From the sequence record NC_042013.1: a stretch of DNA of 64,000 nt. One strand, written 5' to 3'. Below, piece after piece: positions 11,705-54,018 of the stretch. The position numbers and the translations under genes were made by a program. The first letter of the stretch is position 1. Each line of letters begins with the position of its first letter. The notes under the pieces were generated by a model. The model did no database searches. It was not told where the DNA came from and saw only the letters and a list, made by a program, of their open reading frames with translations.

Positions 11705-12226
11705 TTACTTTATAACAGCATTTCCATTTTTGTCAATTTCAATCGTACCTTTCTTGATGCGAATTGAACCTTTTGTTGACTGGTGTTCTGGTCGTTCACG
11801 CGTCGTCCAAGGTGTGGAACAATCGATATGATTGAGGTAATAAGTTGAACCCTTGGCTTTTAATATCCACATCGGGACAACGTCAGGATACTGTAAGTGT
11901 TTTTTATTAAAATGAAATTCAATATTCCTTGCATTGTCAATAGTTAACGGGAATGTTTGAAAATGTTCGGTGATTTCATTTTCAATAGTAAATCTATTTG
12001 AAAGCTGTAATTTAGCCTCGTCTAACAACATCATCATTTTTCTACCCATCGCACGTGATAAGTTGAGACTCGTGGAGTCGGGATTCGTGTTAGTTCTCTG
12101 TAGTTCTTTATATTTCAATTTCTCGCTTCTGATATTTTGAGAAATCTTTTTATAATTGCGTTTCCACTTAGAAACCCAAGCGCGGTAATCTTCTACAGAA
12201 TTGATTTTAGGTGCAAGATCGGTCAT
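11705..12226 (-). CDS. Hypothetical protein
   Basis: ORF in operon; N-terminal coiled coil. Confidence 0.7.
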   Translation of the reverse strand: MTDLAPKINSVEDYRAWVSKWKRNYKKISQNIRSEKLKYKELQRTNTNPDSTSLNLSRAMGRKMMMLLDEAKLQLSNRFTIENEITEHFQTFPLTIDNARNIEFHFNKKHLQYPDVVPMWILKAKGSTYYLNHIDCSTPWTTRERPEHQSTKGSIRIKKGTIEIDKNGNAVIK

Positions 12227-12555
12227 TTTGTTACTCCATTGAAAGTTATAGCGAAAGCAAGCGCAGATGATGATTCTTCGAAATAATAAGCATCCTGACC
12301 GGTATTATACCAATACCTACCGGTTGTTTCTGAAAGCCATTTTTTTATTTCTACCGATTTTTCATATGACGGCTTAACTGGAAGATATATGGTTTTATGA
12401 TCAGGCCAAGTTTCACGAAGGACTTTTGCCCAAGCTTTATCTCCCCACAAATTTGATATAGGCGGGGTGAATTGTGTAACGGGACCGAGAGTCTCGTCGT
12501 TCATAACTTCCATATATTTTTGAATTGCTAATTTCTTACGTTCTATGATGTTCAT
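12223..12555 (-). CDS. Small paralogue-family protein (FE...ALAF motif)
   Basis: Ends YYFEESSSALAFAITF; ATGA overlaps. Confidence 0.7.
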   Translation of the reverse strand: MNIIERKKLAIQKYMEVMNDETLGPVTQFTPPISNLWGDKAWAKVLRETWPDHKTIYLPVKPSYEKSVEIKKWLSETTGRYWYNTGQDAYYFEESSSALAFAITFNGVTK

Positions 12556-13001
12556 CGGACAACTCCAAATCGTTTGGTAATATTATGCGCCTGTTCTTTG
12601 GTGCACGGACCAATACCTACAGCCGTAATAATAGGATTACCATCAAAATGAGGGAGCATTACGTGTCCACTATCGATAACGAGATTCGCAATCAATCCTT
12701 GAGACAACGCCTCTTCGTATGCACGAAGAATTGCATTTTCATTTTTTGCTTTTAAAATGATTTGGGTTCCGATAAAATCTTTACCCTGATATGTAAGGGC
12801 TAGATTTCGATCTTGAGCATATGCCTTGAGGAGGCAATTCTTTGACGCGTGGCACGCTTGGCTTGCAAGCTTTCCTGCTGTCATTTCAAGATCATCGCGA
12901 ACGATGGAGTATATTCTTAATTTGTCGGATGCTTCGACAAATTGTTCTTCAGTTTCGTATCCAAGTTCTTCATAATTAATTCAAAAGTGTTCGCCAATCA
13001 T
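12552..13001 (-). CDS. Peptidyl-tRNA hydrolase, Pth2 family (in-frame UGA at codon 7 from the best start)
   Basis: IVRDDLEMTAGKLASQACHA...QIILKA...VIDSG...TAVGIGP; GAAAGG-N8-ATG at 13001; TGA at 12983-12981. Confidence 0.85.
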
Positions 13002-13031
13002 TGTATTACCTTTCTATGTTGGTTGTTGTTT

Positions 13032-13067
13032 ACGTATCCAATCTATTATACTAAATTGGATACGTCA
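13032..13067 (-). promoter_or_regulatory. Perfect 11-bp inverted repeat over the putative pth2 promoter
   Basis: ACGTATCCAAT 13032-13042 / ATTGGATACGT 13055-13065; TTGACG 13067-13062; no U-tract. Confidence 0.6.
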
Positions 13068-13072
13068 ATATA

Positions 13073-13519
13073 TTATTTTAGTTTATCTGCTAATTTTTGA
13101 ACGAAAATCTTATGCGATCTACGACAAATGTTAAGAGCAGTATCGATATCGTACCATTCAGGAATGCCCTCGAAGTCTGGACGTAATTTAGAACGATCAC
13201 GAGTTTCCATAGCAAAAACGTGCATTTCATATGTTCTGTCAAGGCCGGTAATTTTTTCAGTCATTAACTTATTAACTGATACAAATGACGTAATACCTGT
13301 TTCCTCAGAAACCTCTCTACGGGCGCAAGATTCAGGTGTATCGCCCGCATCTGGATTTCCCTTAGGAACAGACGGCTTGTCACCACCATATGCAGGATCA
13401 GTAGGAGTAACCAAACATACATATACGACATCGTCTTCGATACAATAAGGAATACCACCAGCTTTCCAACGCTCATCTTTTTTGATTCCAGCGAGCTTTT
13501 TAAGTTTGTCAATATTCAT
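13073..13519 (-). CDS. Nudix hydrolase (Ap4A-hydrolase-like)
   Basis: VPKGNPDAGDTPESCARREVSEETG. Confidence 0.85.
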   Translation of the reverse strand: MNIDKLKKLAGIKKDERWKAGGIPYCIEDDVVYVCLVTPTDPAYGGDKPSVPKGNPDAGDTPESCARREVSEETGITSFVSVNKLMTEKITGLDRTYEMHVFAMETRDRSKLRPDFEGIPEWYDIDTALNICRRSHKIFVQKLADKLK

Positions 13520-13521
13520 TT

Positions 13522-13830
13522 TTAATTTCTTTCTATATTACATTCATATCTAAGAACGAATTGTAAGGCATCATCCGAGTCTTCAAATGCTACACCAACA
13601 GAATATGCGCAATGTGAATACCACCCCACACGTTCATATTTATTCTCGCAGTATTCTTCAAGAAATGCCATCATTTCTTTCATGATATCCGCGTTATAGC
13701 GAGACATTTTTACAAGAGTGTAACCGGGGAATTTCTTTTTAATATGCTCTGGAAAGTTACTATCCTCCCAATCATATTCATCAATATCCCAAACGTCGTC
13801 TTCAATGTCATTATCTAAGTCTAAAGTCAT
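13522..13830 (-). CDS. Small paralogue-family protein
   Basis: Ends VGVAFEDSDDALQFVLRY. Confidence 0.7.
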   Translation of the reverse strand: MTLDLDNDIEDDVWDIDEYDWEDSNFPEHIKKKFPGYTLVKMSRYNADIMKEMMAFLEEYCENKYERVGWYSHCAYSVGVAFEDSDDALQFVLRYECNIERN

Positions 13831-13837
13831 AATTTAT

Positions 13838-13885
13838 CTCCATAAAAATTAGTTGCTATCTTGTGAATAACAATATTCTATGGAG
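13838..13885 (-). promoter_or_regulatory. RBS-occluding hairpin
   Basis: Minus strand CTCCATAGAA...TTTTATGGAG (10 bp with one GU) covers the GGAG RBS; TAGAAT -10-like box in the 5' arm. Confidence 0.55.
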
Positions 13886-13898
13886 GTTTAAAAACGAT

Positions 13899-14219
13899 TC
13901 ACTTCATCTTTTTTCCTTTCAATGATATTTCAACCCCTATGGACGGATCATTAAAATATAAAAATTTACCAAACAAGTACCATTCAGCATCATCATTCCA
14001 AATTTCGGTACTCTTCCATGTTCCAAACTTACCGTTAACGTCATTAACGACACGAACCATCGGTTCACCATATTTTTTACTCAGTATGATTCGTAAAATT
14101 TTTGTTGGAACTTCAACAATTTTTAAGTGCAAACAAGTATCAAATCTTTCTTCTGCGATATTAATATATTTGCCTTTTGGTTTCTGATATTTATCAGGCT
14201 TATAATACTTACAAGTCAT
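13899..14219 (-). CDS. Hypothetical protein (possible distant paralogue-family member)
   Basis: Ends FLYFNDPSIGVEISLK. Confidence 0.6.
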   Translation of the reverse strand: MTCKYYKPDKYQKPKGKYINIAEERFDTCLHLKIVEVPTKILRIILSKKYGEPMVRVVNDVNGKFGTWKSTEIWNDDAEWYLFGKFLYFNDPSIGVEISLKGKKMK

Positions 14220-14673
14220 CCTCTATAACCTCAACGTCAAATCCCATAAATTCTTCATAAGGCAATTCAAATATGCAACCGATCTCTTCTTTGTCGTTAG
14301 CTTCCATGATTTTAAAAATGAATTTACCAAATATTTTGCCTTTAATATTTGGAGAACATTTAACCAGTTTTAATACATAGCTTTCGTCAAAGTCCGCGAT
14401 TACAGGAGTCCACGTGGAATCGCTACGTTCATAAAGAGGATTAGGTACTGTTTTATTAAAATACTGTTCAGTAAAAACGGTTTCCCCATTTTCATCAGTC
14501 ACTATTTGTCCATTGTCATCTCTAACAACTTTTTTACCACGTGACACCTGAATCATACCGGCAACGCCCATTTCCCGAAGGAGGACAAGATTATTATCAC
14601 ACCATTCAAGAGGTACGCTAATTGGACTTTTTATTCTAAATTTACTGCCAACGTGAGGGATGAAAACTTTCAT
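14209..14673 (-). CDS. Hypothetical protein
   Basis: ORF overlapping both neighbours in operon. Confidence 0.65.
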   Translation of the reverse strand: MKVFIPHVGSKFRIKSPISVPLEWCDNNLVLLREMGVAGMIQVSRGKKVVRDDNGQIVTDENGETVFTEQYFNKTVPNPLYERSDSTWTPVIADFDESYVLKLVKCSPNIKGKIFGKFIFKIMEANDKEEIGCIFELPYEEFMGFDVEVIEDDL

Positions 14674-15863
14674 TCTTCATCCCCCATTCTAGCACCACCA
14701 ATCAAAAACCTATGATTTTCAACCTGCGTTTTAGAAAAAATGTATTTCAACATCATAGCCTTAATTTCGCCTATTACGGTATTGTAATCGCAATTATAAC
14801 GATACGTATTCATATAGAACGAACGAAATTGTGATTCATTGATCTCGTCAACAACAGAATTGAATTTTTTGGCATCAAACGGATGAGTAGCTTTGTACTT
14901 TTCAACAAAATCCACTATTTGCTTTGCCTTAGAGACAATGTTAGTATGGATTTCTTTTTCAAATTTCTCAATCGTTTCACGTAGTTCGCCCTTCAACACC
15001 GCTTTCACGTCATCAATGGTATCATTCAAAATCATTTCAATTACGTCTTTTTCGAAGATGCAATTTTCAATAGCTTTATGGATTCGGCAGTACCAATCAG
15101 TTTTTATCTTAACCATAAGGCCATTTTCAAAACGAATTACAACACCTTCGATGTCTTCCTCGTTTCTAAGAGTTTCGACAAAATCGTTAATGTTTTCGAA
15201 TTTATGTGTTACCTTTACCACGTCTGCAAGTTTGTGGTTAATAGCAAACCTCCACAGGTTATCATAATTGAAATATCTCCCGGTTTCATTATCTCTAATG
15301 GCCGTCAAAATCATACGTGGCTTTACATAATCAAGTACCACCCGATTTTCTAACGAGCAATATTCGAAAATAGGTGTCAGGTTTACCTTCTGACAATAGA
15401 ATGCGAAATTATGAATATCGCTACCTTCAGGAGCGAATTTCTCTACCAATGGAGAAATTTCAGTATATCCTGCCTTCGTACACCAGTACAAAACATCATT
15501 GACGACTACAGGATGGATCATGGACCCATCTACTTTTTCAAGAGCATGATTTGGAACCGTCCAATCAATTTTATCGACTTGTACGGTAGAATCCTCATTT
15601 AGATTCTTAAACTTATGATACGGCCTTGACAGAATTTTTCCGGTTTCAATATCGAATTTTAAACCACGACATTCTTGTATAAGAAGACGCCTTTCTCGTT
15701 CGGCAGGTTCTAAATCGTCCGTTATTGGAAGAAACGTTTCATTGGTTTTATATGTGTAGATAACCGTTCCAAAACCACGTTCTACGTCAAGATTGACAAC
15801 AAAGAACTCATTATCTTTGATGGCCTCGAGAATTGGTTCAACCGTGTTTAAAATAGCAAACAT
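14670..15863 (-). CDS. RNA ligase 1 (T4 Rnl1-like)
   Basis: ECRGLKF, SRPYHKFKN, EKVDGS, TPIFE, EGVVI, VKIKTDWY. Confidence 0.9.
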   Translation of the reverse strand: MFAILNTVEPILEAIKDNEFFVVNLDVERGFGTVIYTYKTNETFLPITDDLEPAERERRLLIQECRGLKFDIETGKILSRPYHKFKNLNEDSTVQVDKIDWTVPNHALEKVDGSMIHPVVVNDVLYWCTKAGYTEISPLVEKFAPEGSDIHNFAFYCQKVNLTPIFEYCSLENRVVLDYVKPRMILTAIRDNETGRYFNYDNLWRFAINHKLADVVKVTHKFENINDFVETLRNEEDIEGVVIRFENGLMVKIKTDWYCRIHKAIENCIFEKDVIEMILNDTIDDVKAVLKGELRETIEKFEKEIHTNIVSKAKQIVDFVEKYKATHPFDAKKFNSVVDEINESQFRSFYMNTYRYNCDYNTVIGEIKAMMLKYIFSKTQVENHRFLIGGARMGDEE

Positions 15864-15912
15864 ATAAAACTCCTTTGTTGAATTATTTTATAACCCATTA
15901 TCGGTTAAGAAG

Positions 15913-16197
15913 TCAAATATATTCGTCCATTAATAAAATAGAAAGCGCCTCGGCTTCGTCCTCGATATATATTACCGCTATTATATCATCTTCACCCATC
16001 GTCAATTCGAAATAATATTCGCATTCTAAGTAGTTGTCGAGATGTGATCTTACCAAACGATTTTTATATGCTTGTGTCGTTACGTTATCTGAAATTTTTT
16101 TGACAACACGAATCCAATTTTTATTGATATTAGAATCGATTGTTCCTTTGCGCATATATTTTAGTAATTGATGTTTTGGAAGCGAATTAAGAAACAT
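15913..16197 (-). CDS. Small paralogue-family protein
   Basis: Start MFLNSL at 16197; ends IYIEDEAEALSILLM. Confidence 0.6.
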   Translation of the reverse strand: MFLNSLPKHQLLKYMRKGTIDSNINKNWIRVVKKISDNVTTQAYKNRLVRSHLDNYLECEYYFELTMGEDDIIAVIYIEDEAEALSILLMDEYI

Positions 16198-16219
16198 AAT
16201 ATAAACCCTAGAAGTAATA

Positions 16220-16243
16220 AAGGGGCAGTATAACCTGCCCCTT
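16220..16243. terminator. Intrinsic terminator after the VWA gene
   Basis: AAGGGGCAG-TATAAC-CTGCCCCTT. Confidence 0.8.
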
Positions 16244-16252
16244 TGTCGTTCG

Positions 16253-17542
16253 TCAATATTTGTCGTAAAAAGCGGTTTCGCCAAAACCTGGGTCAAATGC
16301 GTCGTAGTTACTATGAATAACGAACAACGTCTTCGTCCATTCTTCGTGCGCAAGGCCGCAATCGCCGCCGTCATAACCGTCCGTGAACATAATGAAGCAC
16401 TTAGGTTCAATTGGCGAAAGATCATCAAAGCCGTGGCTAGATGGGTCTTTCATAAATTCCCAATTCGAGGTGAAGTACGTGCCGCCGCCGCCTTCTGGAA
16501 CATAATCCATAATTTCATCAAGGTTATGCGGAGTAAACAGCTTAGGCTGATATACTCGGGTATCGAACGTCCAAAGCCAAAGATTGAAATCTTCGAACTC
16601 GTCCATAATGCCCTTAACCTCAGAAAGGAAGTCCGTAAGCATTTCGTTAGTCATCGAACCGGAGGTATCGATAGACACCGCAACGTCAATGGTATCAACA
16701 TTGCGAACACCCGGCAGAATAACGCCAAGATGCCAAGAACGCTTAGATGGGTTAGAGAACGAATAGTCGCCCTTAACGGTGCTCTTGATATGAACACTCA
16801 AGAGTGCACGCCAATCCATCTTCGGAGTGTTAAGATCATCAAGGTAACGCTGCATAAAGCCCGGTACGTCACCAGCCGACATAGACTGTGCGGCAGTCAT
16901 CATCTGCTGCATAATGTCATTGCGAATCTGGTTAATATCCTCTTCAGTAAGCTTCGGAGGACCGTCAGGACCGCCAGCAATAGAAACCGTTACCGAATTA
17001 CTGCTCTTACCTTTACCATCCTTACCATCGTCACCTTCAGATGCGTCAAGATGGTCGTCCATTGGAATTTCAATCTTGATCTGGTTGTCGATAAGGTAAG
17101 CATAAATTTCATCGGCAGACATCTCGTCCGTAAAACGATCATCAAGAAGAATGTTTGCATTTGTTGGCGGAACACCAAATGCTTCCTTCTTAAGAATGTA
17201 ATTAACGAGATAGTCGGTTGCCATACCCCAAACCTGAATGTCGCGGGTTCCGCGTCGACCAAGGTGGTCAAGGCAAAGATGAAGAATCTGGTGACCGAAT
17301 ACGAATTTCAGGTTATCAAGTGTAAGCTGAGAAGCCCAATGGAAGTTGTAGTAAAACTTACGACCGTCCGTCGAGCAAGTACGGCACCAAGAAGATGCTT
17401 CGCACAGTTCAAGCTGTGCAATGATAGAGCCAAGGAATGGCTTCTTGAAAAGGAGGTGGAAACGTGCGCGAACCATTTGTTCTTCAAGCGCATCAATCGC
17501 TTCACGTGGAATTTTGGTAGGTGCTTTAACTTCTTCGGTCAC
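16253..17542 (-). CDS. DUF2201-type metallopeptidase-like plus VWA (MIDAS) protein
   Basis: STDG, GHQILH...H (HExxH variant), DTSGS...GGGT...TDG. Confidence 0.85.
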   Translation of the reverse strand: MTEEVKAPTKIPREAIDALEEQMVRARFHLLFKKPFLGSIIAQLELCEASSWCRTCSTDGRKFYYNFHWASQLTLDNLKFVFGHQILHLCLDHLGRRGTRDIQVWGMATDYLVNYILKKEAFGVPPTNANILLDDRFTDEMSADEIYAYLIDNQIKIEIPMDDHLDASEGDDGKDGKGKSSNSVTVSIAGGPDGPPKLTEEDINQIRNDIMQQMMTAAQSMSAGDVPGFMQRYLDDLNTPKMDWRALLSVHIKSTVKGDYSFSNPSKRSWHLGVILPGVRNVDTIDVAVSIDTSGSMTNEMLTDFLSEVKGIMDEFEDFNLWLWTFDTRVYQPKLFTPHNLDEIMDYVPEGGGGTYFTSNWEFMKDPSSHGFDDLSPIEPKCFIMFTDGYDGGDCGLAHEEWTKTLFVIHSNYDAFDPGFGETAFYDKY

Positions 17543-17570
17543 TTCATATTCCTTTCGTTATTAACAAAAT

Positions 17571-17608
17571 AAAGTAGGGCCAGCAACTACTCTAACTGGC
17601 CCTACTTT
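17571..17608 (-). terminator. Intrinsic terminator between AAA and VWA genes
   Basis: 13-bp stem AAAGTAGGGCCAG / CTGGCCCTACTTT, followed by TTTATTTTGTT on the minus strand. Confidence 0.75.
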
Positions 17609-17615
17609 TATCGGA

Positions 17616-23739: not shown

Positions 23740-24174
23740 TTACTTTCCTTCTGATAAAATAAACTGGACAAAGAATTCTTCAAATAGACTATAAGATTGC
23801 TCTTCCTCAAACAATAACCATAGTTCAAAACTACCATTCAACCCGTCACGCTCAACCCATCCATTATGATAAAATGAGTTCTGGTCGTCGTGATGGTGGC
23901 AAAAATTTGAATTTACGTGATCAAAGATTTTATATGTCCAATTATAGGAATGATCTTGTTCGTGTAAATATCGACGTAATTTTTCAACTACAACATATAC
24001 AATTGAATAAATTTCGTATGAATTGATAGTGCTTTTGCTTGTAACATCAATCTTTGATGACATCATATACTTAAATTTTTTGACGAGTTCTTGGTCATAC
24101 GGAGAAAGACTTGGTAGGTATAAAGTCTCTCTTTGAATGCGCAACACTCGCAAATCGTGGTTTGTTAGGTCCAT
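23740..24174 (-). CDS. Paralogue-family protein
   Basis: Start MDLTNH (GAGGA RBS); ends LLFEEEQSYSLF. Confidence 0.65.
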   Translation of the reverse strand: MDLTNHDLRVLRIQRETLYLPSLSPYDQELVKKFKYMMSSKIDVTSKSTINSYEIYSIVYVVVEKLRRYLHEQDHSYNWTYKIFDHVNSNFCHHHDDQNSFYHNGWVERDGLNGSFELWLLFEEEQSYSLFEEFFVQFILSEGK

Positions 24175-24218
24175 ATGTTTATTCCTCAATCAATTTATGG
24201 ATAGTACCATATTTGATT

Positions 24219-24569
24219 TCAACCTTGCAAATTAAATCGCAGGAGAAAAGGAATAGCGTCCTCGTCCGTCATTTCAAGATAAATTGAGTATACGGTATGA
24301 GAATACCCTTCAAAACAAATGTCGTCATAAATTTCCAAAGGTTCTGGATAAACAACCATACGCGGGGATAAACTGATTTCATTTAGATATGATATTACGG
24401 ATGGAAGCAAACTATACGTTATGAAATGTATTGATCCAGAATCGGTTGTCACCAATTCGGTTACTTCAAATTCATGTACATTTTCCAATGGCGAGTTCAA
24501 CATTTTGATAGTCCAATTCTGTACGTATACGTTTTGGACACCAATAACCGTTTTCTCGTACTTTTTCAA
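24219..24569 (-). CDS. Paralogue-family protein
   Basis: Ends YLEMTDEDAIPFLLRF; start uncertain. Confidence 0.6.
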   Translation of the reverse strand: MKKYEKTVIGVQNVYVQNWTIKMLNSPLENVHEFEVTELVTTDSGSIHFITYSLLPSVISYLNEISLSPRMVVYPEPLEIYDDICFEGYSHTVYSIYLEMTDEDAIPFLLRFNLQG

Positions 24570-25876: not shown

Positions 25877-27130
25877 TTAAAATCCAAATAAATCAGCAAA
25901 ATCGTCTGAAATTTTTGTTTTTGACAAATCCCATTTCAGAACGCCTAGAAGATTGCCCATTTTTTTATCAATGATGATCTCTTCCATCGCAGCTTCATCA
26001 AATGGTAATGTCTTGAACCATTCAGGTAAGGTGATATCGTCATATGGAAATGCGATAGACGTCATACCCATAACATTTTGTTTTAATTTACACACAACTA
26101 CGTTAGCACCATCAGTTAGCTCGGTTGCATATTTGTCTGCATTAAGCTTTCTAAGTTTGTTCCAGTTAATTGCCGCCTGAACGTGGCCGGGGACCATTAC
26201 TTTCTTTTTAGATGCAAATGTAGAAGGTTGATTTCCATTTAAACCCAATTTCCCCATATATGAGGTTAGACCATTAACTTTTTTAGGAGAACCCTTGTCC
26301 CAAGGTGATCGTTTTCTAAAAACATTAAAACGAAAATCTCGTATTTTGTTAATGGTTTCTTCTTCGCCAGCACCTTGAAGAACATCCATTAGGGTGCTTT
26401 CCATAAACTCTTGCATGTACTTTGGTGTATCGGAGCGTTTAATTTCAAGGCCAACCGCTTTAATTTTACCCGGCTTCCCATCAATATCAAGACGACCGTT
26501 ATCTTCATCCCAAAACTTCAATACCGCATATCTCTTCTTTTTCATAAAGATTGCATTTTCAGCCACAAGCTCAAGTCCTGCTGCGATAATAGAACCGTTT
26601 TCGATACCCGTGTTAAACGCCCTATTCATAAATGGAGGGAATGATTGATTAACAAGGTCGCCAACCGTTTTATACAATTCAAGAACGGTGTCCTTATCAT
26701 CAGCAAGCGAGGCTGTTTCTGGATTGCTTTTCAAAATATTATATGCGGTGAAGTACGCTGAGTCTGTATCATTATATGCAATAGCACCACCCTTATACGT
26801 ATATTCTCCCATAATATTTTCATTCAGTGCTGATGACATATGCTTAGTAACACTACGTCCTGTCAAGGTAACCGACTGGCCGAGGCGCTTATCGAAGAAC
26901 AAACACCCTTCATTTAGCAACGCACCATAAAGAGAGTTCAAAAGAATCTTAACAGCTTGTTGGCGCTGGTTCCAATAATCCGACTGTGCTTTTAATTGCT
27001 TTGCTACATCTTTTCTTGGAACAATTACACGCCCGTCCAGCACTAAATCGTGTTCTTCCATAAACGCTTTGATTGCCTTTACGTCACGATTTTTTACTAG
27101 TTCATTCAAATGATTTACATCATATTCCAC
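25877..27130 (-). CDS. Family B DNA polymerase, C-terminal subunit (fingers, palm, thumb)
   Basis: KILLNSLYG (motif B), YNDTDS (motif C), KKRY, GLEIKRSDTP; GTG start with AGGTG RBS. Confidence 0.92.
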   Translation of the reverse strand: MEYDVNHLNELVKNRDVKAIKAFMEEHDLVLDGRVIVPRKDVAKQLKAQSDYWNQRQQAVKILLNSLYGALLNEGCLFFDKRLGQSVTLTGRSVTKHMSSALNENIMGEYTYKGGAIAYNDTDSAYFTAYNILKSNPETASLADDKDTVLELYKTVGDLVNQSFPPFMNRAFNTGIENGSIIAAGLELVAENAIFMKKKRYAVLKFWDEDNGRLDIDGKPGKIKAVGLEIKRSDTPKYMQEFMESTLMDVLQGAGEEETINKIRDFRFNVFRKRSPWDKGSPKKVNGLTSYMGKLGLNGNQPSTFASKKKVMVPGHVQAAINWNKLRKLNADKYATELTDGANVVVCKLKQNVMGMTSIAFPYDDITLPEWFKTLPFDEAAMEEIIIDKKMGNLLGVLKWDLSKTKISDDFADLFGF

Positions 27131-27148: not shown

Positions 27149-28846
27149 TTATTTCAATTGATTCAAAAGGTCGTCATCAATTTCAACGCCTTTGGACATC
27201 ATATTAAGATTGTATGATTTCGCCCTCATATCTTTACGGCCTGCATACCATTCCGCTAGAAGTTCTGCGATAATAGAGGGAACGTCTTTTCTAAAGATTG
27301 TACCGTTTGCTGAAATTATGTATTTGGAATCTTCGCCAAATACGAAATCATAAAATTGTTCACCAGACGTTGTGATTGATGTACCGTCTTCAAAATCAAC
27401 AACTATTTCGGTTTCTTCTTTATTATAAACGGCGTCATATTCTAATGCTGCAAACACTTCATGCCACGCGTCAACCGGAGTATATCCATTTTTGATACGA
27501 TCTGCGATAAACGCGTCAGTGTATGATGGTCGTATTTGACCGACGATTGTTTCTGGTCCCATGTTAAGTGATCGAAGAACCGATGGATAAAGAGAATTGA
27601 TATCCACGCAACCAATCATTTTATAATAACCGGGGTCAGGGTCTGCAACGTATGCGCCTACTGCTGCTTTTTCGCCGTCATCATCATCATCGTCAATATT
27701 ATCAACTGGCTGATCATCATCAGAAGGTTCGTCTGTTTTCTTCGCAGGAACTTGCATTCCTTTTTCCCAAACGCTATTCGTTATCGCCTGATCGATCATC
27801 GCAACTGAACCCTGCGTTGTCTTAAGAATAACACTATTGGAATGAGCAAGCTGATTATGAAGTTCGATATACCGTCTCTTAAGGTCGATCTTATAAATGA
27901 GATACGTATCCTGACGGTTGTATGCGATGAATTTTTCAAAATCACGTTTATACAGATTATCGAGGGTTCCTTCGTACGGAACCTTGTTTTCACCAACTTC
28001 GATTTGACCAATATAATCAAGCTTATAGGTGTGCATTTTTTGAGGATTGTGCTTCTGGTATAATTCCAGATAATCCATATGTACACGCCCTACGTAGTCA
28101 AACGTTTCATTCTCTTTACCAAAACGAAGGTACTTGCGTTTTTTTGGTTGGAGTCCCCAAAGGCACATTTTAGAGGCATACGATTTTCCTAAAACCCTAA
28201 GGATTCTATTAGTAGTATACGGGACGTCGTATCCAGTTGAATTCCATCCAGTCAAAACGTCCACATCATCAATAACATCAAGGAAATTTTGCAATAGTTC
28301 TTTTTCTGAAAGACACAGATACGTGTTCTCAAATTTATCACAAATCGCTTTTGCTTCCTCGTCAGTAAGATAGTCTGGATCATCTTCTGGCAAATCAGGC
28401 TTGAGGACAAACGTGATCAAACTACTAATACTGGTTAGATAGATTGATATAGCGGTGATACGAGAAAATGGATCGGTTGTCGGAGCGAACCCACGTTCAG
28501 GGTCAAAGTCCGTCTCAATATCGAAAAACCCTAAATTAAATTCTGGCGATGGCTTATTCTTATAATTGTCATACAGACATCTAAAAATAGGATTTACACT
28601 ATTTTCGTGAATCTTTTTCCCGACTTGGATATCAGCATTCATTTCACTCATGAATTTCTGACGATTATTAAACATACGTTTTGTGCAACGGTTTCCCCAC
28701 ATTGTACGGCTGCTGCCATTTGGGTCTTCATAGTAATAAACATATTCCGCATTGAATTCACGAAATACTCTCTCGCCCTTTTCATTGCGCTCAACCACTT
28801 TGATTTTGTTCTTGACTGTATCGTTATATGCATCTACAAAAGGCAT
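27149..28846 (-). CDS. Family B DNA polymerase, N-terminal subunit (3'-5' exonuclease plus motif A)
   Basis: FDIET, GWNSTGYD, YKLD, YNRQD, DINSLYPS. Confidence 0.92.
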   Translation of the reverse strand: MPFVDAYNDTVKNKIKVVERNEKGERVFREFNAEYVYYYEDPNGSSRTMWGNRCTKRMFNNRQKFMSEMNADIQVGKKIHENSVNPIFRCLYDNYKNKPSPEFNLGFFDIETDFDPERGFAPTTDPFSRITAISIYLTSISSLITFVLKPDLPEDDPDYLTDEEAKAICDKFENTYLCLSEKELLQNFLDVIDDVDVLTGWNSTGYDVPYTTNRILRVLGKSYASKMCLWGLQPKKRKYLRFGKENETFDYVGRVHMDYLELYQKHNPQKMHTYKLDYIGQIEVGENKVPYEGTLDNLYKRDFEKFIAYNRQDTYLIYKIDLKRRYIELHNQLAHSNSVILKTTQGSVAMIDQAITNSVWEKGMQVPAKKTDEPSDDDQPVDNIDDDDDDGEKAAVGAYVADPDPGYYKMIGCVDINSLYPSVLRSLNMGPETIVGQIRPSYTDAFIADRIKNGYTPVDAWHEVFAALEYDAVYNKEETEIVVDFEDGTSITTSGEQFYDFVFGEDSKYIISANGTIFRKDVPSIIAELLAEWYAGRKDMRAKSYNLNMMSKGVEIDDDLLNQLK

Positions 28847-29387: not shown

Positions 29388-29632
29388 GAATTAGCTTTAA
29401 TGATAATCGAATCGCAATGACAACGTTTCGGTTTACAAAAACAAATCAAATCTTTACCACGAAGTGCTGAAACGTCCAATGTAGGCAAAATATTTTGTTC
29501 GAATTTATCGCAAACGTCGTCTCGGTCGCCATCTTTTCCAATAACATATGGGTTACCATATGGTGATCCTCTACCACAATAAATGGCGTCTGAAGGTGCG
29601 GTATTGTGATATTTGTTATGAACTTTAGGCAT
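29384..29632 (-). CDS. DUF4326 family protein
   Basis: YCGRGSPYGNPY...LRGKDLICFCKPKRCHCD. Confidence 0.85.
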   Translation of the reverse strand: MPKVHNKYHNTAPSDAIYCGRGSPYGNPYVIGKDGDRDDVCDKFEQNILPTLDVSALRGKDLICFCKPKRCHCDSIIIKANS

Positions 29633-30029
29633 TTAACACCAGTGCAGCAGTTAGCATATCTTCTTCATTTTCGAATACTAATTCAAAAAATGTCTCAAAG
29701 TACCATTCAACAATTACGTGATAACATACGATATTGAATTGCATATATTGTGAAAGTTTATTGTAAATTTCATCACAAGCAGTTAGAGATTCTATATTTT
29801 CATTAAAACCTTTAATTTTACCAACATATGTCATTGGAAGATTATCAAATTCAAATGTTATAGTTGAAATCTCAACTGTGTACGTTTTAAACGTATCCAA
29901 ATCAATAACACGCTCGTTTGGAAAAAATGACAGACGTTTTCCATCATAAATGAATTCGTCATAATCTTTGCATAATCGTAAATATGGGGCAATTCCTGCC
30001 CCATATCGTTCAATCAACTTCGTTGACAT
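29625..30029 (-). CDS. Paralogue-family protein
   Basis: Ends ELVFENEEDMLTAAL. Confidence 0.65.
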   Translation of the reverse strand: MSTKLIERYGAGIAPYLRLCKDYDEFIYDGKRLSFFPNERVIDLDTFKTYTVEISTITFEFDNLPMTYVGKIKGFNENIESLTACDEIYNKLSQYMQFNIVCYHVIVEWYFETFFELVFENEEDMLTAALVLNA

Positions 30030-46459: not shown

Positions 46460-46467
46460 CAGAATTA

Positions 46468-46932
46468 ATGAATACCCTATTTTGTGATTTGGACGGAGTT
46501 CTCGTAAATTTTGAGGCAGGTTTTTATGATAACTTCAACGTCCCCCATAGTTCTGTACCGGAAGATGAAGCATGGGATATGATCGAAAATCATCATATGC
46601 ATTGGGATAATCTCCCACCAATGGATGATTGGAATATGCTGTGGTCATACATCAAGAAATATAAGCCTATCATCCTAACTGGTTGTCCTCGTATTGGTCA
46701 TGATATTGCGGCTGCTGGAAAGCGCGAGTGGGTAAAAAAGCACCTTGGTAGTGACGTCCCTGTAATTACTTGTTTCTCAAAAGACAAGCAGCTACACATG
46801 AAAAACAAAGGTGACGTATTAATCGATGATCTCGTGAAAAACATCAAGAGGTGGAAAGAGGCGGGCGGTAATGGTCTACTGCACGTAGATTCGTTGTCAA
46901 CGATTGGCAAACTCAAGGAACTTGGATGGTAA
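46468..46932 (+). CDS. HAD-family 5'(3')-deoxyribonucleotidase (NT5C-like)
   Basis: DLDGVL, ILTG, GKREW, LIDD. Confidence 0.88.
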   Translation: MNTLFCDLDGVLVNFEAGFYDNFNVPHSSVPEDEAWDMIENHHMHWDNLPPMDDWNMLWSYIKKYKPIILTGCPRIGHDIAAAGKREWVKKHLGSDVPVITCFSKDKQLHMKNKGDVLIDDLVKNIKRWKEAGGNGLLHVDSLSTIGKLKELGW

Positions 46933-47291
46933 ATAACGAGTCCCACTTGCTGTTTGATATAGTGGTTGGAGAGGTGTTTTTTATAAAAATAGCTCTCGCC
47001 ACCTCTTTCTTATCATTGGTTATTATAATGATTAGTGGATTGTATTGGATGGTAGCAGTGGATATTGTTATCTTCTCGTTGTTTTTTGCCGCAATACAAC
47101 AACGTTCCATTTCTAAATATTGGTGCTTATATTCTTTTCACAAATTCATTATCCGTAATGATAGGCAGCGCGCATATATGGATAATATCGATATTAGTGA
47201 TAAAATATGTTGCCCATCGTATCTATATGACCAAGACGCGGTAGTTTTGAGATACGAACACGACACGTTGGCGTTAAGATTAATGGAATAA
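46926..47291 (+). CDS. Membrane-anchored hypothetical protein (possible paralogue-family member)
   Basis: Two TM helices; ends VVLRYEHDTLALRLM. Confidence 0.5.
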   Translation: MVNNESHLLFDIVVGEVFFIKIALATSFLSLVIIMISGLYWMVAVDIVIFSLFFAAIQQRSISKYWCLYSFHKFIIRNDRQRAYMDNIDISDKICCPSYLYDQDAVVLRYEHDTLALRLME

Positions 47292-47294
47292 AAA

Positions 47295-47618
47295 ATGACA
47301 GAAACACTTGCAAATTATATTACCGAATATCTAAACGAAATGAAACAGGAAAACGAAAAGTTTCTAATTGAATTTCCGTTTTTCTGGTTGCCCCCGTTTC
47401 AGGAAAAATACACCAATGCGAATCACCTTACCTATAAAGATTTCGGTGATATCATTGATAAAAGTAATGAATTAACAGAAAAAATAAAACAATATGTCTC
47501 GGTTGAGGACTTCCTCGCATTTGATACGCGATTCGGCGGCGAATACAAGGAATATTCTCTTGGCATTCTTTTCAGAAATGAAGACGATAAATTAACTGCT
47601 ATGCTCGCGTGCGGATAG
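47295..47618 (+). CDS. Paralogue-family protein
   Basis: Ends GILFRNEDDKLTAML. Confidence 0.65.
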   Translation: MTETLANYITEYLNEMKQENEKFLIEFPFFWLPPFQEKYTNANHLTYKDFGDIIDKSNELTEKIKQYVSVEDFLAFDTRFGGEYKEYSLGILFRNEDDKLTAMLACG

Positions 47619-47991: not shown

Positions 47992-48038
47992 ATTACACCT
48001 AAATACAATAAACAGTTAATTATGAAGGATATCACGTT

Positions 48039-48245
48039 ATGGGAGATAAAGTCAAATTTATTGATATTGGAAGCAAATCTATTAATGCATACGACATCGT
48101 CGCCCATTACATTGTAGACCAATCATATGTGATCGACTTGGTTTCAGACCGCCATATATTTAATAGCCCTGTTGACATCGCTGACCCTGAAGCTACTAAA
48201 CAAGAGGTATCTGATATAATAACTCAAATTGAAAATGATCAATAA
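48039..48245 (+). CDS. Small hypothetical protein
   Basis: GAAGGA RBS; TAAATA at 48000-48005. Confidence 0.55.
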   Translation: MGDKVKFIDIGSKSINAYDIVAHYIVDQSYVIDLVSDRHIFNSPVDIADPEATKQEVSDIITQIENDQ

Positions 48246-48968: not shown

Positions 48969-49483
48969 TGTTCTTCCTCGTTTTGTTCTGTATCTTCGCC
49001 GCCGTCTTCTGCTGCGAATTGTGTATTTGTATCAATGTTTTCATCACGTGCGTCTGAAATATCTTCGATATCGATCATAGAGTCATACAATTCAAGATCG
49101 TCATCATCAAGCTCTTCAATAAACTGACGTGGAATTTTAATTGTAACAAGCCAAATTTCTTTTTCAACAAAAGCAGGACGACCATTTGCGGTGCTTGAAG
49201 GAGGAACAGTGTCGTCCTTCATTTTACGAAATGCTTTTGCGTATTTTACCTTTGCGCCGTGCTTTATAATTCTAACAGCGCCCTGTGGGTCTGGCATTTC
49301 ATCAATAGGAAACGCCAGAGTGATGGTAACCCAATATCGTTCGATATTAGGTCCATCAACTACTTCAGCATCAAACCAGTTGTCAAAAACGTAGACATCC
49401 AAATTATCAAGGAAGTCCTCAATTTGAATTAGAACTGAAATGAGCGTTGCATTTTTTTGTAATCTCGTTAAGAAATTTGACAT
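48965..49483 (-). CDS. Hypothetical protein
   Basis: L...EDFLD.LD.YV..NW...EVV.GP...RYWV...MPDP.G; start ATG 49483. Confidence 0.75.
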   Translation of the reverse strand: MSNFLTRLQKNATLISVLIQIEDFLDNLDVYVFDNWFDAEVVDGPNIERYWVTITLAFPIDEMPDPQGAVRIIKHGAKVKYAKAFRKMKDDTVPPSSTANGRPAFVEKEIWLVTIKIPRQFIEELDDDDLELYDSMIDIEDISDARDENIDTNTQFAAEDGGEDTEQNEEEQ

Positions 49484-49526
49484 CGCATAATATACCAAGT
49501 TTTTCCTTCTTAGGTATTTATGCGAT
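49482..49526 (-). promoter_or_regulatory. TAAATA late promoter in a hairpin covering the start codon
   Basis: ATCGCATAA / TTATGCGAT (9 bp) plus inner ATACC / GGTAT; TAAATA overlaps the 5' arm. Confidence 0.7.
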
Positions 49527-49531
49527 TTGTA

Positions 49532-50302
49532 TTAACTTAATTTGATATCCAAAAGTTGATAAAATAGATGCAATTTATTACCGGTCAAGCGATTAACTTC
49601 TCTGATATTGTCAACGTTTCCATCTTTAACGGCTTTGATAAGCATCGTATATTTTTTAGTAATATCATTTATATGTGACCCTTTGAATTTTTTCATTTGT
49701 TCAAAGTCACACGTCACTGATCCAGAGCTAAAAATTTCAAAATACCGGCTTGACAAGCAAAGGATAACAAAAAACACCTTGTCCTCAAAGGACATGTTAT
49801 CAATTTTATATGCGGCATTGTTATATGATTGTGCAGCACGATCACAAATGTTATTCCACTGTGGATCAATTTTGTCATACGGTGCTGGTTTTCCATTAGG
49901 AAACTTTTTCAAAAGCGTTTCTCGTGCTGCATTAATTTTTTCCTGACGCCTTTTAACTTCATTGTCAACGCGTTCATTAATAGCGGCGATTGATTGGATT
50001 GATTCATATCCACGCAATGAAACTGCTAAGATCAGTTCCTCAAACAAGCTAACAATAGTTTCGTCCTCGGTGTGCTTAGCCGCATCAAGAATCATCAATT
50101 CAAATGCAAATGGCATTAGGTCAAGACGTTCTGCCATACCCATACGTCCGATATTACTTGCACTTGGATAGTTGATTTGTGGTTTTGATTTAGCGGTATT
50201 AGTAAGCGTCTCAAACAGTTTGGATTCTGCCGCCGCCTCTCGTTCTTTTTCCATCAGTTCAATCATTTCACCACTAATAATAAAATTTTCATCCATAATC
50301 AT
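49532..50302 (-). CDS. Hypothetical helical protein
   Basis: ORF in operon. Confidence 0.65.
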   Translation of the reverse strand: MIMDENFIISGEMIELMEKEREAAAESKLFETLTNTAKSKPQINYPSASNIGRMGMAERLDLMPFAFELMILDAAKHTEDETIVSLFEELILAVSLRGYESIQSIAAINERVDNEVKRRQEKINAARETLLKKFPNGKPAPYDKIDPQWNNICDRAAQSYNNAAYKIDNMSFEDKVFFVILCLSSRYFEIFSSGSVTCDFEQMKKFKGSHINDITKKYTMLIKAVKDGNVDNIREVNRLTGNKLHLFYQLLDIKLS

Positions 50303-50970
50303 GATACAACTCCTGCCTTTTTCAAAAGATTAATAACGGTTTCATATGAAAATTTACGTTCTTTGATATATTCTATGTCAAATTCAACGATATTATATCC
50401 ATCCATGTTAACTTTTTTAATACATTCATTCATTCCACGAACAATTTTTTGTTCGAATGGTGTGAGATTGAAAATAGAAAATGGAAGAGAAACAATCTTA
50501 GTTTCGATATGTTCACACATAAGAGCGTACTGTTCTTTGACAGCCTCCGCTCTGTCATCAAGAGTTTTTGACGTCTCGAGACTCCGTTTATGATTGTTAA
50601 TACTATCATAGTATTGCTTCATTCTCATGTCATTTTGAAGTTTTACAGAATTATATTTTTTTGAAATTTGTTCACCGATTTCTGGAATCGTCAAAACTGC
50701 TCGCGTGATGAGACTTTCTATTTCGTTTGAAAGGAGAGAAAGTTTTTCATTATTTTTTGTGGACGTCAAAAATTGCAAAACCGTATCAACCAGAACAGGT
50801 TCGCATCCTATCATTTCGGATATTTCATTAGATGGGGGGAAAATAATACGAGGAGCAGATTCCAACTCAGGTCTTATTGGTTCAGAACTATAATAGCGAC
50901 TCGTTTGCCTAAGAGACGAAATTGATCGTCCCTCGTCAAAAATAGCCTGAGCATTTTCCTGCGTTATCAT
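50299..50970 (-). CDS. Hypothetical helical protein
   Basis: Start MITQEN at 50970 with AAGGAG RBS. Confidence 0.7.
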   Translation of the reverse strand: MITQENAQAIFDEGRSISSLRQTSRYYSSEPIRPELESAPRIIFPPSNEISEMIGCEPVLVDTVLQFLTSTKNNEKLSLLSNEIESLITRAVLTIPEIGEQISKKYNSVKLQNDMRMKQYYDSINNHKRSLETSKTLDDRAEAVKEQYALMCEHIETKIVSLPFSIFNLTPFEQKIVRGMNECIKKVNMDGYNIVEFDIEYIKERKFSYETVINLLKKAGVVS

Positions 50971-50977
50971 CAAAATA

Positions 50978-51026
50978 TCTCCTTTCATTGAGTTTTTACA
51001 CTACAATGAAAGGAGAGTATTGTCAA
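50978..51026 (-). promoter_or_regulatory. sigma70-like promoter whose spacer is a perfect 13-nt anti-RBS
   Basis: TTGACA-N17-TAGTGT; TCTCCTTTCATTG 50978-50990 / CAATGAAAGGAGA 51004-51016. Confidence 0.85.
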
Positions 51027-51791
51027 TCAAACATCTACATCTTTGTAGAGTTCAAGAATTTCTTTAATAACAGGATGGCGTTCAACATTTTTATAGCTGA
51101 ACTTAACCACATCGATCATACGGCTGTTTTCAAATCTCGTCAAGAAATCTGAAAGACCGTTGTCTTTGCCTCTATCGCCCTGTCTTTCGTCACCAGTAAT
51201 GATAAGTTTAGAGCCTTCACCAATACGAGTTAGTACTGATAGCATAGAACGTACTGTTGAGTTCTGTGCTTCGTCAAAAATCACCCACGCTTTCTTAAAT
51301 GTTCGACCACGGATATATGCAATTGGAACTAGTTCAATAATGCCTTCTTCAAGCATTTTTTCAATTTCCATTTTACTAAAGTATTCATTGAATACGTCAA
51401 GCACCGGTTGACACCAAGGGGCTAATTTAGCGATAATATCACCGGGAAGGAAACCAATGTCTTTATCATCAACTGCGATGTTTGGACGTGTTACGACAAT
51501 CTTTTCTATCTCACCTGCCTTTAATGCTTTGATTGCCATAGTTGTTGCTACGTGGGTTTTACCCGTACCTGCTGGACCAACAGCAAAAACGATATGTTTG
51601 CGCTTATCAGACAAACTTTCGATTAATGCCTCTTGTTCAACATTTTTTGGAAGAATGTTTACTTCTTTTGATCTTTTTTTGGTAGGGATGTCAAGTTCAA
51701 TCACGTTGTCTTTGCGTGAACGGTGATTGGAACGCGGGGCGCGTTCTTGACGAGAGGAACGATTATTACGGGTTGCTGCTCTTTTAGCCAA
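51027..51791 (-). CDS. phoH: PhoH-family ATPase
   Basis: GPAGTGKT, TRP, IGFLPG, YIRGRT, DEAQN, TRIGEGS, GD..Q.D, RH; probable TTG start 51791. Confidence 0.93.
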   Translation of the reverse strand: MAKRAATRNNRSSRQERAPRSNHRSRKDNVIELDIPTKKRSKEVNILPKNVEQEALIESLSDKRKHIVFAVGPAGTGKTHVATTMAIKALKAGEIEKIVVTRPNIAVDDKDIGFLPGDIIAKLAPWCQPVLDVFNEYFSKMEIEKMLEEGIIELVPIAYIRGRTFKKAWVIFDEAQNSTVRSMLSVLTRIGEGSKLIITGDERQGDRGKDNGLSDFLTRFENSRMIDVVKFSYKNVERHPVIKEILELYKDVDV

Positions 51792-51870
51792 AGTCATCTC
51801 CTGACAATTTAGGCTTCTCACATAAGTATTTATCTTTTAAAAAAGCAGATAATGTGACAGTTATATGAAA

Positions 51871-51888
51871 ATGGCCCTTGCGGGCCAT
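51871..51888. terminator. Intrinsic terminator
   Basis: ATGGCCC-TTGC-GGGCCAT flanked by A/T runs. Confidence 0.8.
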
Positions 51889-51893
51889 ATTTT

Positions 51894-52514
51894 TTAAGCT
51901 ATCCAACCGGGGTGCGTACACCCATCATTTGTGATACAATCGTAAATTTCTTTCCAAGACCAAACTCGCTTTGCGCCAGTTTCTTTGAAGTGACGATTGT
52001 ATGTTCGTGTAATCAAAAATGACATATGACCAAGGCGAGCACCGTCCTCCGCGTGTTTCGGATGATCCTCAATCCAATATGTAGGTCTATAACGGCTAAG
52101 ATATTTTTCTTTACTTGCTCCAACAGGAACAAGATGAACCGTATCAAACGTGTCTGGAAAATATTTTTCAAGATTTCCCCTACGCGCTTCTTTATGCCAT
52201 TCGTCGTCGTTACAAGCGGATATCGCAACGAATTTGTATCCCTCTCGTTTCAACCACGAAACGGTGTCAACAGCATCTTCCATAGGTTCCAAATAAGGAA
52301 ACCAATCTGGATCATTATTGAAATCACGAACAATTGGTCGGGTATCCTCATATGACATACCTAGCCAATCCTCAACGTTCATTGAATCGCGCAAGCCGAC
52401 TAGTGGAACAGCTACACCATATTTCAAATGATTAGCCCTGAACCACTTTTCAAATCCGTTTCCCCAATTAAGAAGAACACCGTCAACATCTGTTAAAATG
52501 AATTTATTCGTCAT
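51894..52514 (-). CDS. HAD-family nucleotidase (T4 gp30.2-like)
   Basis: TDVDGVLLNW, AISA, WIEDH; start ATG 52514. Confidence 0.8.
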   Translation of the reverse strand: MTNKFILTDVDGVLLNWGNGFEKWFRANHLKYGVAVPLVGLRDSMNVEDWLGMSYEDTRPIVRDFNNDPDWFPYLEPMEDAVDTVSWLKREGYKFVAISACNDDEWHKEARRGNLEKYFPDTFDTVHLVPVGASKEKYLSRYRPTYWIEDHPKHAEDGARLGHMSFLITRTYNRHFKETGAKRVWSWKEIYDCITNDGCTHPGWIA

Positions 52515-52818
52515 TATTACCACCTCCAAACATAGCTTTAGCTGCCGCCATATTTTCAGGTGACGCCTGCGCCCAAGCCGCAATAAATTTACCAATTTCT
52601 TCACGATAACGGCTTACGTAATCAATAAACGGGTTGTCGTTTTCTTCCTCAAAACGGTTCTTTATGACCTTTCCATTAAACAAATCAAAAATCAAGGACG
52701 CGCTTGTTAAAATATTTGCTTTTGGAAGAGTATCATACAATCTCATATTTTCAACGACCTTACCCTCGAGATTGGTATCTTTATGAATATGAGTAATTAC
52801 CATATAGATTGTTTTCAT
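52504..52818 (-). CDS. Hypothetical protein
   Basis: ORF in operon. Confidence 0.65.
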   Translation of the reverse strand: MKTIYMVITHIHKDTNLEGKVVENMRLYDTLPKANILTSASLIFDLFNGKVIKNRFEEENDNPFIDYVSRYREEIGKFIAAWAQASPENMAAAKAMFGGGNNDE

Positions 52819-52819
52819 A

Positions 52820-53767
52820 TTAAGTTTCCTTTACGCGCTGTAGATTGACTAAGCATGCAGCGAGATTAATTTCAGGATCAAAAATTGTAGTGTGAATGTT
52901 TGCAGCCTCGGCAATAGTAATCAGAGCCATATTATGATGCTCCTCGGTATCACCAAACAGTTCAAGATTTTTAGAGAAATAACGATAGACATCCTCATAC
53001 GTACCGTCGCCCATTTGTGCGCAAAGATATTTACGAGCCTCCGTATATTTTCCTGCCAGAAACATTTCGCAAAAAGTTACGATATAATCTAGACTTGCGT
53101 CGGTTCCGGCTTCCATCTTGTTAAGAGTGCCGTTGATAGTATTCTGCTCAAGAAGATTGATACATTTACGCATATCTGGAAATGTCTTTTCAACATAATC
53201 CAAAATATGCTCTGGTTCGAACGTTACGTCTTCGGAAACAAGAATGTCAAAAACACGCGTTACAAATCCCTCTTTATCCAGACCGTCAAGATGAAACCCT
53301 TGAACACGACTATGAAGAGCGGGGATGATTTTTGATGCGGTGTTAGCGGTAAGAATGAAACGCGCTGTATCTGAATGCAATTCCATTTCCGCACGCAACG
53401 CCTTTTGAGCGGCAGGAGTGAAACCGTCGACCTCGTCAAGAATTACAATTTTGAAATCGCCCATAGGCCAAGTAGAACAGAAATTAGAAATATTCTGACG
53501 AACCTCGTCAATACCGTTATTTCTGGATGCATTGATATAAAGCAAATCAGCTTTTTCAACTTTCATTTCATTACAAAGAATGAAAGCAAGTGTAGTCTTG
53601 CCAGTACCCTGTACACCACTCAATAAAAGATGTGGAATAGGAATGTTCTTTTTTTCAGGATTGGCAAGCCAACCAAGAACGGTTTCTTTCATACGTTCGT
53701 CTTTAAAGACATATCCTTCGATACCAGAAGGACGATATTTTTCTACCCAAAGTTCTTTAATAGCCAT
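52820..53767 (-). CDS. Clamp loader AAA+ subunit (gp44/RFC-like)
   Basis: LWVEKYRP, GVQGTGKT, INAS, ILDEVD, LHSR, PDMR. Confidence 0.92.
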   Translation of the reverse strand: MAIKELWVEKYRPSGIEGYVFKDERMKETVLGWLANPEKKNIPIPHLLLSGVQGTGKTTLAFILCNEMKVEKADLLYINASRNNGIDEVRQNISNFCSTWPMGDFKIVILDEVDGFTPAAQKALRAEMELHSDTARFILTANTASKIIPALHSRVQGFHLDGLDKEGFVTRVFDILVSEDVTFEPEHILDYVEKTFPDMRKCINLLEQNTINGTLNKMEAGTDASLDYIVTFCEMFLAGKYTEARKYLCAQMGDGTYEDVYRYFSKNLELFGDTEEHHNMALITIAEAANIHTTIFDPEINLAACLVNLQRVKET

Positions 53768-53769
53768 TT

Positions 53770-53821
53770 GTTATAGTCCGTTATTTTGTTTATTTCTAAC
53801 TGTAACAAACCGGCCTATAAC
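53770..53821 (-). promoter_or_regulatory. Long imperfect hairpin over the clamp-loader RBS
   Basis: GTTATAG / CTATAAC, CCG / CGG and TTTGTT / AACAAA stems; TAAATA lies upstream (53829-53838). Confidence 0.5.
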
Positions 53822-53835
53822 GTTTCAATATTTAT

Positions 53836-54018
53836 TTAATGAAATCTCAATATAAACGCAGAAGCATCTTCACCACGTTTGAAGCTTACATTTGATGGAG
53901 ACCAAACGTAATGAACAATTTCCATGTCCGCGCACCATTCATCGATTTCTTCTTTAGTCACACCCTCAGGGATTTCGATATTATGTAGGCCAACAGTTAA
54001 TAGATTTTTTACGACCAT
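53836..54018 (-). CDS. Minimal paralogue-family protein (60 aa)
   Basis: EEIDEWC...VSFKRGEDASAFILRF; AGGAG RBS. Confidence 0.7.
   Translation of the reverse strand: MVVKNLLTVGLHNIEIPEGVTKEEIDEWCADMEIVHYVWSPSNVSFKRGEDASAFILRFH

Follow-up and report, generated by a model that had tools for sequence, protein, structure and literature searches.

The stretch of DNA analyzed here (64,000 nucleotides of record NC_042013.1, hereafter the window) comprises bases 186001-250000 of Agrobacterium phage Atu_ph07, a jumbo phage of 490,380 bp. An earlier note on the window had described a dispersed family of about ten small paralogues with a common C-terminal ending, F(E/K/R)xxxD(A)xxFxL, and all ten of these open reading frames (ORFs), labeled below by their start positions in the window, are present with the coordinates and C-terminal endings that it gave. 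Eight of them are hypothetical proteins in the RefSeq annotation, and two (23740-24189 and 46926-47291) carry no annotation. Between six and eight of these ORFs appear to be diverged copies of a single alpha+beta domain of ~50 amino acids, predicted to be ferredoxin-like without the last strand.

Orthologues of all ten ORFs are carried by metagenomic contigs of close relatives. For eight of the ten, the ratio of nonsynonymous to synonymous substitution rates (dN/dS, Nei-Gojobori, against these relatives) was 0.04-0.19 at dS ~0.7-1.4; for 47295, dS was saturated in the comparison with its relative, at an amino-acid identity of 66%, and the orthologues of 29625 and 53836 were near-identical. The C-terminal residues rank among the best kept positions of the ten ORFs in the same comparisons. 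Because of these orthologues and low dN/dS values, the ten ORFs are, on comparative sequence grounds, genuine protein-coding genes under purifying selection. The low ratios also speak against the description of the domain as diversifying: the copies appear to be diverged yet individually conserved, without diversification on the measurable timescale, and two of them keep syntenic orthologues in Sinorhizobium phage Phosso, a distant relative whose RNA ligase is 36% identical to that of Atu_ph07.

The fold of the shared region was predicted for the 60-amino-acid protein 53836 with AlphaFold2, using an alignment of seven window members. The model had a predicted local distance difference test score (pLDDT) of 85.2 and consisted of beta-1 (residues 12-15), alpha-1 (22-31), beta-2 (37-39), beta-3 (43-46) and alpha-2 (49-59). 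The independent BFVD model of 53836 agreed with it (template modeling score, TM, 0.86), the BFVD model of 13522 resembled it (TM 0.57), and the ESM Atlas models of 12223 and 53836 landed on one common viral cluster of 606 members. In the 53836 model the shared C-terminus is the core of a beta-alpha-beta-beta-alpha domain of ~50 amino acids and no appended tag. By the order of elements in this model, the motif covers beta-3, an acidic helix cap and the amphipathic alpha-2, and the preceding helix noticed earlier, which is real, corresponds to alpha-1. Protein 53836 is, as had been proposed, the bare and minimal domain.

Taken literally, the pattern F(E/K/R)xxxD(A)xxFxL matched only 13522 and 53836 in the whole Atu_ph07 genome; the shared ending behind it is nevertheless present beyond chance. 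A 16-residue weight matrix, scored by leave-one-out, gave 12-20 bits for seven of the ten ORFs and -3.4, 4.7 and 6.4 bits for 13899, 23740 and 46926, respectively. The rest of the genome, with 742 ORFs that the author of the earlier note had not seen, served as a fair test set: ten matches of >=10 bits fell within 30 residues of the C-terminus, compared with 1.25 +/- 1.1 in shuffles (maximum 5 in 200), and no match of >=10 bits fell near the N-terminus. A matrix scan of 100 kb of the T4 early region also returned no match. The distance from the end of the motif to the stop codon is 0-7 residues in each of the seven stronger members. Pairwise BLAST similarity among the ten was confined to 16-25 C-terminal residues, and jackhmmer and phmmer searches among the members and all genome ORFs gave no cross hits, save 347322 with 430807 outside the window. 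An alpha-1 ending in aromatic-Cys/Leu-x-Glu-Asn together with a beta-2 aromatic residue was seen in the aligned 12223, 13522 and 53836 and partly in 15913, and this signature was degenerate in 24219, 29625 and 47295.

In the syntenic region of Phosso, small ORFs carry a cleaner motif ending and a clear alpha-1 signature, and two of them are the orthologues of window members 13522 and 12223. The canonical ending, nine residues long, was then written as a degenerate DNA pattern, which was run on IMG/VR and on 596 Gb of prokaryote genomes. The IMG/VR search gave at least 54 matches; among the matches listed, 53 of 54 were in frame and lay 0-14 codons ahead of the stop in an ORF of 41-194 amino acids; these ORFs also have the upstream helix and the aromatic residues. 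Several contigs among the matches listed harbor 2-4 copies, and many are 330-608 kb in length. The prokaryote genomes gave at least 48 matches, mostly out of frame, and about seven of the 48 listed look real (Microvirga, Sphingobium and perhaps Methylobacterium). The predicted domain falls into a family that occurs almost only in viruses and that no database names; its canonical form has the end DAxLFKLRW and EWCxEN in alpha-1.

An independent profile was built from 83 Phosso and IMG/VR sequences with zero Atu_ph07 input and was searched against all Atu_ph07 ORFs together with reversed decoys. It found 13522, 53836, 12223 and six ORFs outside the window at E <0.1, with the first decoy at 0.63, and 14 real Atu_ph07 ORFs outranked the first reversed decoy; 29625, 47295 and 23740 were returned at E 1.5-6.9, and 15913, 24219, 13899 and 46926 were unlisted. 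A leave-one-out profile hidden Markov model (HMM) of 55 amino acids retrieved 13522 only. In hhalign comparisons of single sequences, 13522, 53836, 12223 and five of the outside ORFs scored 21-32, the best of 110 decoys 15.3, 29625 16.5, and 23740, 24219, 15913 and 47295 11.6-13.9. With orthologues added, 29625, 23740, 24219, 15913 and 47295 reached 13.6-16.6 in the correct profile columns, compared with a maximum of 12.9 for 32 controls, and 13899 and 46926 remained at ~9. When the seven-member window alignment was compared as a set with 30 canonical viral proteins, hhalign gave 90.8% and E 1.2e-6 over 42 columns, from alpha-1 to alpha-2. A matrix derived from the verified members only was also applied genome-wide and returned 14 ORFs at >=6 bits against 1.7 expected (chance ~0.002 per shuffled ORF).

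From the four membership tests and the set-level hhalign comparison, we therefore judge three of the ten ORFs (12223, 13522 and 53836) to be secure, five to be probable or possible and two (13899 and 46926) to be unsupported. Of the proposed ten-member family, the shared C-terminal module, its preceding helix and the unrelated N-terminal parts are upheld, but the full membership is not.

The first secure member, 13522 (gp258, 13522..13830, minus strand; 102 amino acids), had E 1.1e-7 against the non-Atu profile and 85.6% in hhalign. A canonical protein of Phosso is its reciprocal orthologue (phmmer 9e-20, tblastn 2e-8) and matches 13522 alone among 50,697 phage records; dN/dS of 13522 is 0.04. 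The protein has a net charge of -15 and begins with a poly-acidic tail, followed by the domain; the tail, which comprises the first 30 residues and is similar in kind in the Phosso orthologue, is probably disordered. The bare domain 53836 (gp313, 53836..54018, minus strand) matched the same profile at E 1.4e-4 and reached 85.4% in hhalign. The third secure member, 12223 (gp255, 12223..12555, minus strand; 110 amino acids), carries the domain at about residues 52-110, with E 1e-3 and an hhalign score of 22.9 against 15.3 for the top decoy; its syntenic Phosso orthologue (4.9e-14) occupies the same place after a peptidyl-tRNA hydrolase gene, and dN/dS is 0.06.

Three further ORFs are probable members. 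For 24219 (gp273, 24219..24503, minus strand; 94 amino acids as annotated, in an ORF extendable to 24569), the verified-only matrix gave 8.7 bits (p ~7e-4 per ORF), hhalign with its orthologue gave a score of 15.1 over 54 columns, which exceeds all 32 controls, and dN/dS is 0.19; it also shows a local C-terminal match to 13522 (44% over 25 amino acids). The matrix scores of 29625 (gp280, 29625..30029, minus strand; 134 amino acids) were 17.7 bits by leave-one-out and 5.8 bits with verified members only, and its hhalign scores of 16.5-16.6 lie slightly over the decoys, with a hmmsearch E of 1.5, which is not significant. For 47295 (gp302, 47295..47618, plus strand; 107 amino acids), which has local matches to 29625 and 13522, the verified-only matrix gave 6.3 bits (p ~2e-3), and hhalign with the orthologue gave 13.6, over the 32 controls yet within the larger decoy range. 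Two others are possible members. The first, 15913 (gp262, 15913..16197, minus strand; 94 amino acids; dN/dS 0.15), scored 14.0 bits by leave-one-out but 1.8 bits with the verified-only matrix, and 14.5 in hhalign with its orthologues; it holds the slot before the RNA ligase, and family members fill that slot in Phosso. The second, 23740 (23740..24189, minus strand; 149 amino acids), is one of the two unannotated genes but is called as a gene in two relatives (dN/dS 0.08), with 4.5 bits from the verified-only matrix and 15.3 from hhalign with its orthologue.

The two unsupported ORFs are nevertheless real genes. For 13899 (gp259, 13899..14219, minus strand), the matrix scores were -3.4 (leave-one-out) and -5.4 bits (verified-only), and the hhalign score of 9.2 lies inside the control range. 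Its annotated product has 53 amino acids, and the conserved ORF has 106 (107 amino acids as called in a relative, dN/dS 0.13); because the longer ORF is conserved, the annotated start is probably mis-set. The unannotated 46926 (46926..47291, plus strand; 121 amino acids) scored 6.4 and -1.7 bits in the two matrices and 8.8 in hhalign; it is called in a relative (dN/dS 0.16), and its hydrophobic N-terminal half probably spans the membrane.

Copy number differs among the phages. A mixed profile gave 42 six-frame matches in Phosso, whereas in Atu_ph07 it gave the 11 seeds and four additional, weak matches. About 50 Phosso ORFs within ~150 kb matched the IMG/VR-only profile. We estimate that many uncultured phages carry one to four copies, Phosso ~40-50 or more, and Atu_ph07 roughly 12-20 diverged ones, including a 335-amino-acid protein with the domain near its end and a Phosso orthologue at 2.7e-62. 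Compared with the canonical Phosso members, the Atu_ph07 copies are fewer and far more diverged, and most lack the Lys and Trp of the ending; it is because of this divergence, with the canonical Lys and Trp mostly lost, that single-sequence and family-library searches miss them. Searches of Pfam, PHROGs and NCBIfam returned nothing at E <0.01 for window, Phosso or canonical viral members, and profile searches of PDB sequences returned nothing significant for the family. A word-based search with three query proteins and a profile search of 1.84 billion proteins found only seeds, orthologues in near relatives and one false positive; tblastn of a canonical viral member against the 50,697 phage records gave no match, and single-protein searches of Phosso with 29625, 47295 and 53836 gave nothing useful. 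In the literature searched, the motif string occurred in no relevant paper, and a family of this kind goes unmentioned in the examined publications on these phages. Two candidate relationships were discarded: an 847-amino-acid tandem-repeat protein, P0005, whose 11 matches to a short profile (E 1.8e-9) are a repeat-amplified false positive, and a link to the RaK2-type EExxFQxS small-protein family, the motif of which is absent from Atu_ph07, homology having been sought by this motif alone.

Outside the window, plain phmmer detects one pair of copies only, 347322-347489 with 430807-431346 (2e-4). In two places (genome positions 449023-450074 and 346751-347489), a pair of ORFs with the motif lie next to each other, which suggests local duplication.

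Structural comparison places the domain among common folds. A Foldseek search of the PDB with the 53836 model found nothing at E <=0.001, and in a comparison with solved structures the top match was Pes4 RRM4 (Z 6.0, root-mean-square deviation 1.4 A over 51 residues), followed by MoaD-like, MzrA, ACT and HMA structures. The order beta-alpha-beta-beta-alpha and the packing are alike in ferredoxin-like domains (RRM, ACT, HMA, MzrA and pterin dehydratase/DCoH), but the family has no sequence similarity to them and lacks ribonucleoprotein (RNP), metal-binding and ligand motifs; Z values of <=6 are within the range expected of a common arrangement. The fourth ferredoxin-like strand is absent in most members, as the chain stops one to three residues past the second helix.

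We consider the family and fold as described here to be very probably correct. Several observations weigh against this description. By the independent profile alone, significance is lacking for five of the eight proposed members, which depend on the short motif and weak hhalign scores, plus synteny for 15913, and these scores are partly inflated because the genes had been chosen for that motif in the first place. Structure prediction, one of the checks proposed earlier, bears out the fold for 53836 and, indirectly, for 13522 and 12223; 53836 alone has a confident model, and the AlphaFold2 model of 47295, from a two-sequence alignment, had a pLDDT of 46 and was uninformative. The best PDB matches are also generic and say nothing about function. 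A skeptical interpretation is that the ending is a generic combination of strand, acidic cap and amphipathic helix that arose independently in ten unrelated ORFans and was picked out by eye. The missing cross hits in pairwise and iterative searches, the single member retrieved by the leave-one-out domain HMM, the similar strand-helix in RRM and other ferredoxin-like domains, and the two of the ten ORFs that look like chance inclusions are all in keeping with such an artifact. It would not account for the eightfold enrichment of the motif near C-termini, with none near N-termini, in the unseen part of the genome, nor for its absence from 100 kb of T4, the match between profiles of the window members and of a viral family that was gathered independently, or the canonical motif borne by the Phosso orthologues. 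Independent origin is therefore largely refuted for 12223, 13522 and 53836, and we regard it as improbable overall.

Concerning function, conservation across the family involves mostly core hydrophobic residues, and the N-terminal parts and the hairpin vary. Since the conserved residues are mostly core-forming, the fold would act as a scaffold, on which each copy could acquire its own target through an N-terminal extension unrelated to those of the other copies, through the variable hairpin and through the exposed face of the sheet. The copies may thus be intracellular binders or regulators, made early or in mid-infection and each kept for its own partner; this proposal is based on their being small, mostly acidic, located among genes for replication, nucleotide metabolism and putative RNA repair and without virion annotation (no member is annotated as a virion protein, though the record flags proteins detected by mass spectrometry), but their isoelectric points resemble those of other small ORFs of Atu_ph07. 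The binder mechanism as such is tentative; taken as a whole, diverged domain copies acting as binders is the explanation that we favor, with some reserve. A bolder version, in which a phage-specific mini-domain would be the scaffold of a diversified library of host-directed binders for takeover or counter-defense, with dozens of copies in Rhizobiales jumbo phages, is a little more doubtful still; each copy, such as the poly-acidic-tailed 13522, would then neutralize a different host protein. The domain might instead be a small RRM-like nucleic-acid-binding module whose copies regulate phage or host transcripts, tRNA or replication intermediates. That the top structural match is an RRM, that the canonical family keeps the Lys and Arg of the last helix almost without exception, and that members adjoin genes for peptidyl-tRNA hydrolase, RNA ligase, polymerase, ligase and clamp-loader (in Phosso, tRNA synthetases) would suit this role, which we nevertheless find unlikely: the members are mostly acidic (median isoelectric point 5.5 in viral contigs; several in the window carry a net charge of -5 to -15), none matches RRM or anything else in Pfam, the Lys is gone from most Atu_ph07 copies, and the 53836 model is three-stranded and ends after helix 2, without the fourth strand of the RRM sheet. 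About equally unlikely is that the copies are accessory subunits or regulators of adjoining phage enzymes, for example 12223 with peptidyl-tRNA hydrolase and the kinase-phosphatase, rather than host-targeting. Here the argument comes from a four-gene block of PTH2, 12223, gp254 and a kinase-metallophosphatase with 4-nucleotide start-stop overlaps (window 10416-12884, minus strand), which is kept in Phosso (L019, 33653-36178) although the RNA ligases of the two phages are only 36% identical. However, this is the one conserved neighborhood; the neighbor of 13522 differs between Atu_ph07 and Phosso, and many of the Phosso copies form tandem arrays away from any enzyme gene. The predicted complex of 12223 with the neighboring peptidyl-tRNA hydrolase had a score of 0.00, a "no answer" that counts neither for nor against binding. 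The block lies near the T4-type RNA ligase and may be an RNA-repair module.

Small ORFans of jumbo phages are left blank by standard annotation, and a set of them is tied here to one compact domain, which is widespread in uncultured phages yet was not found in Pfam, PHROGs, NCBIfam, the PDB or the searched literature. A family model would annotate roughly 2-3% of the genes of Atu_ph07 and 6-10% of those in its Sinorhizobium relatives, and would allow such expansions to be tested as libraries of anti-host binders. At 50-60 amino acids, the domain is a defined and tiny target for structure determination and interaction screens. The analysis also illustrates how a sister genome that has changed less, in this case Phosso, can serve to anchor paralogues that have diverged very far.

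The earlier note had also assigned gated promoters to two members. Promoter-like sites do lie at 53836 and 15913, the latter overlapping a hairpin, but both are consensus matches only. Upstream of 53836, in a 65-bp gap, a sigma-70-type promoter-like site (54051..54079, minus strand) agrees with the consensus at 11 of 12 positions, with a 17-nucleotide spacer and an extended -10 TG, and is the best such site in 44-56 kb. Upstream of 15913, a terminator hairpin with a 10-bp GC-rich stem (16219-16256, minus strand) overlaps a promoter-like site (10 of 12 positions), and this overlap is probably what was called a gated promoter.

Two minor observations concern the window itself. Sequence near-identical to window positions 12000-16500 was present in runs of 14 studies, among them biofilm, honey, marine sediment, wastewater, compost and tobacco metagenomes, and relatives include contigs of 492-498 kb. 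The search of sequencing runs thereby placed the phage or its close kin in metagenomes, and it turned up no transcriptome of an infection. In addition, the family-B DNA polymerase in the window is split into two ORFs (25877-27130 and 27149-28846, minus strand; 417 and 565 amino acids) that lie 18 bases apart, whereas the polymerase of Phosso is encoded by one 3-kb gene.

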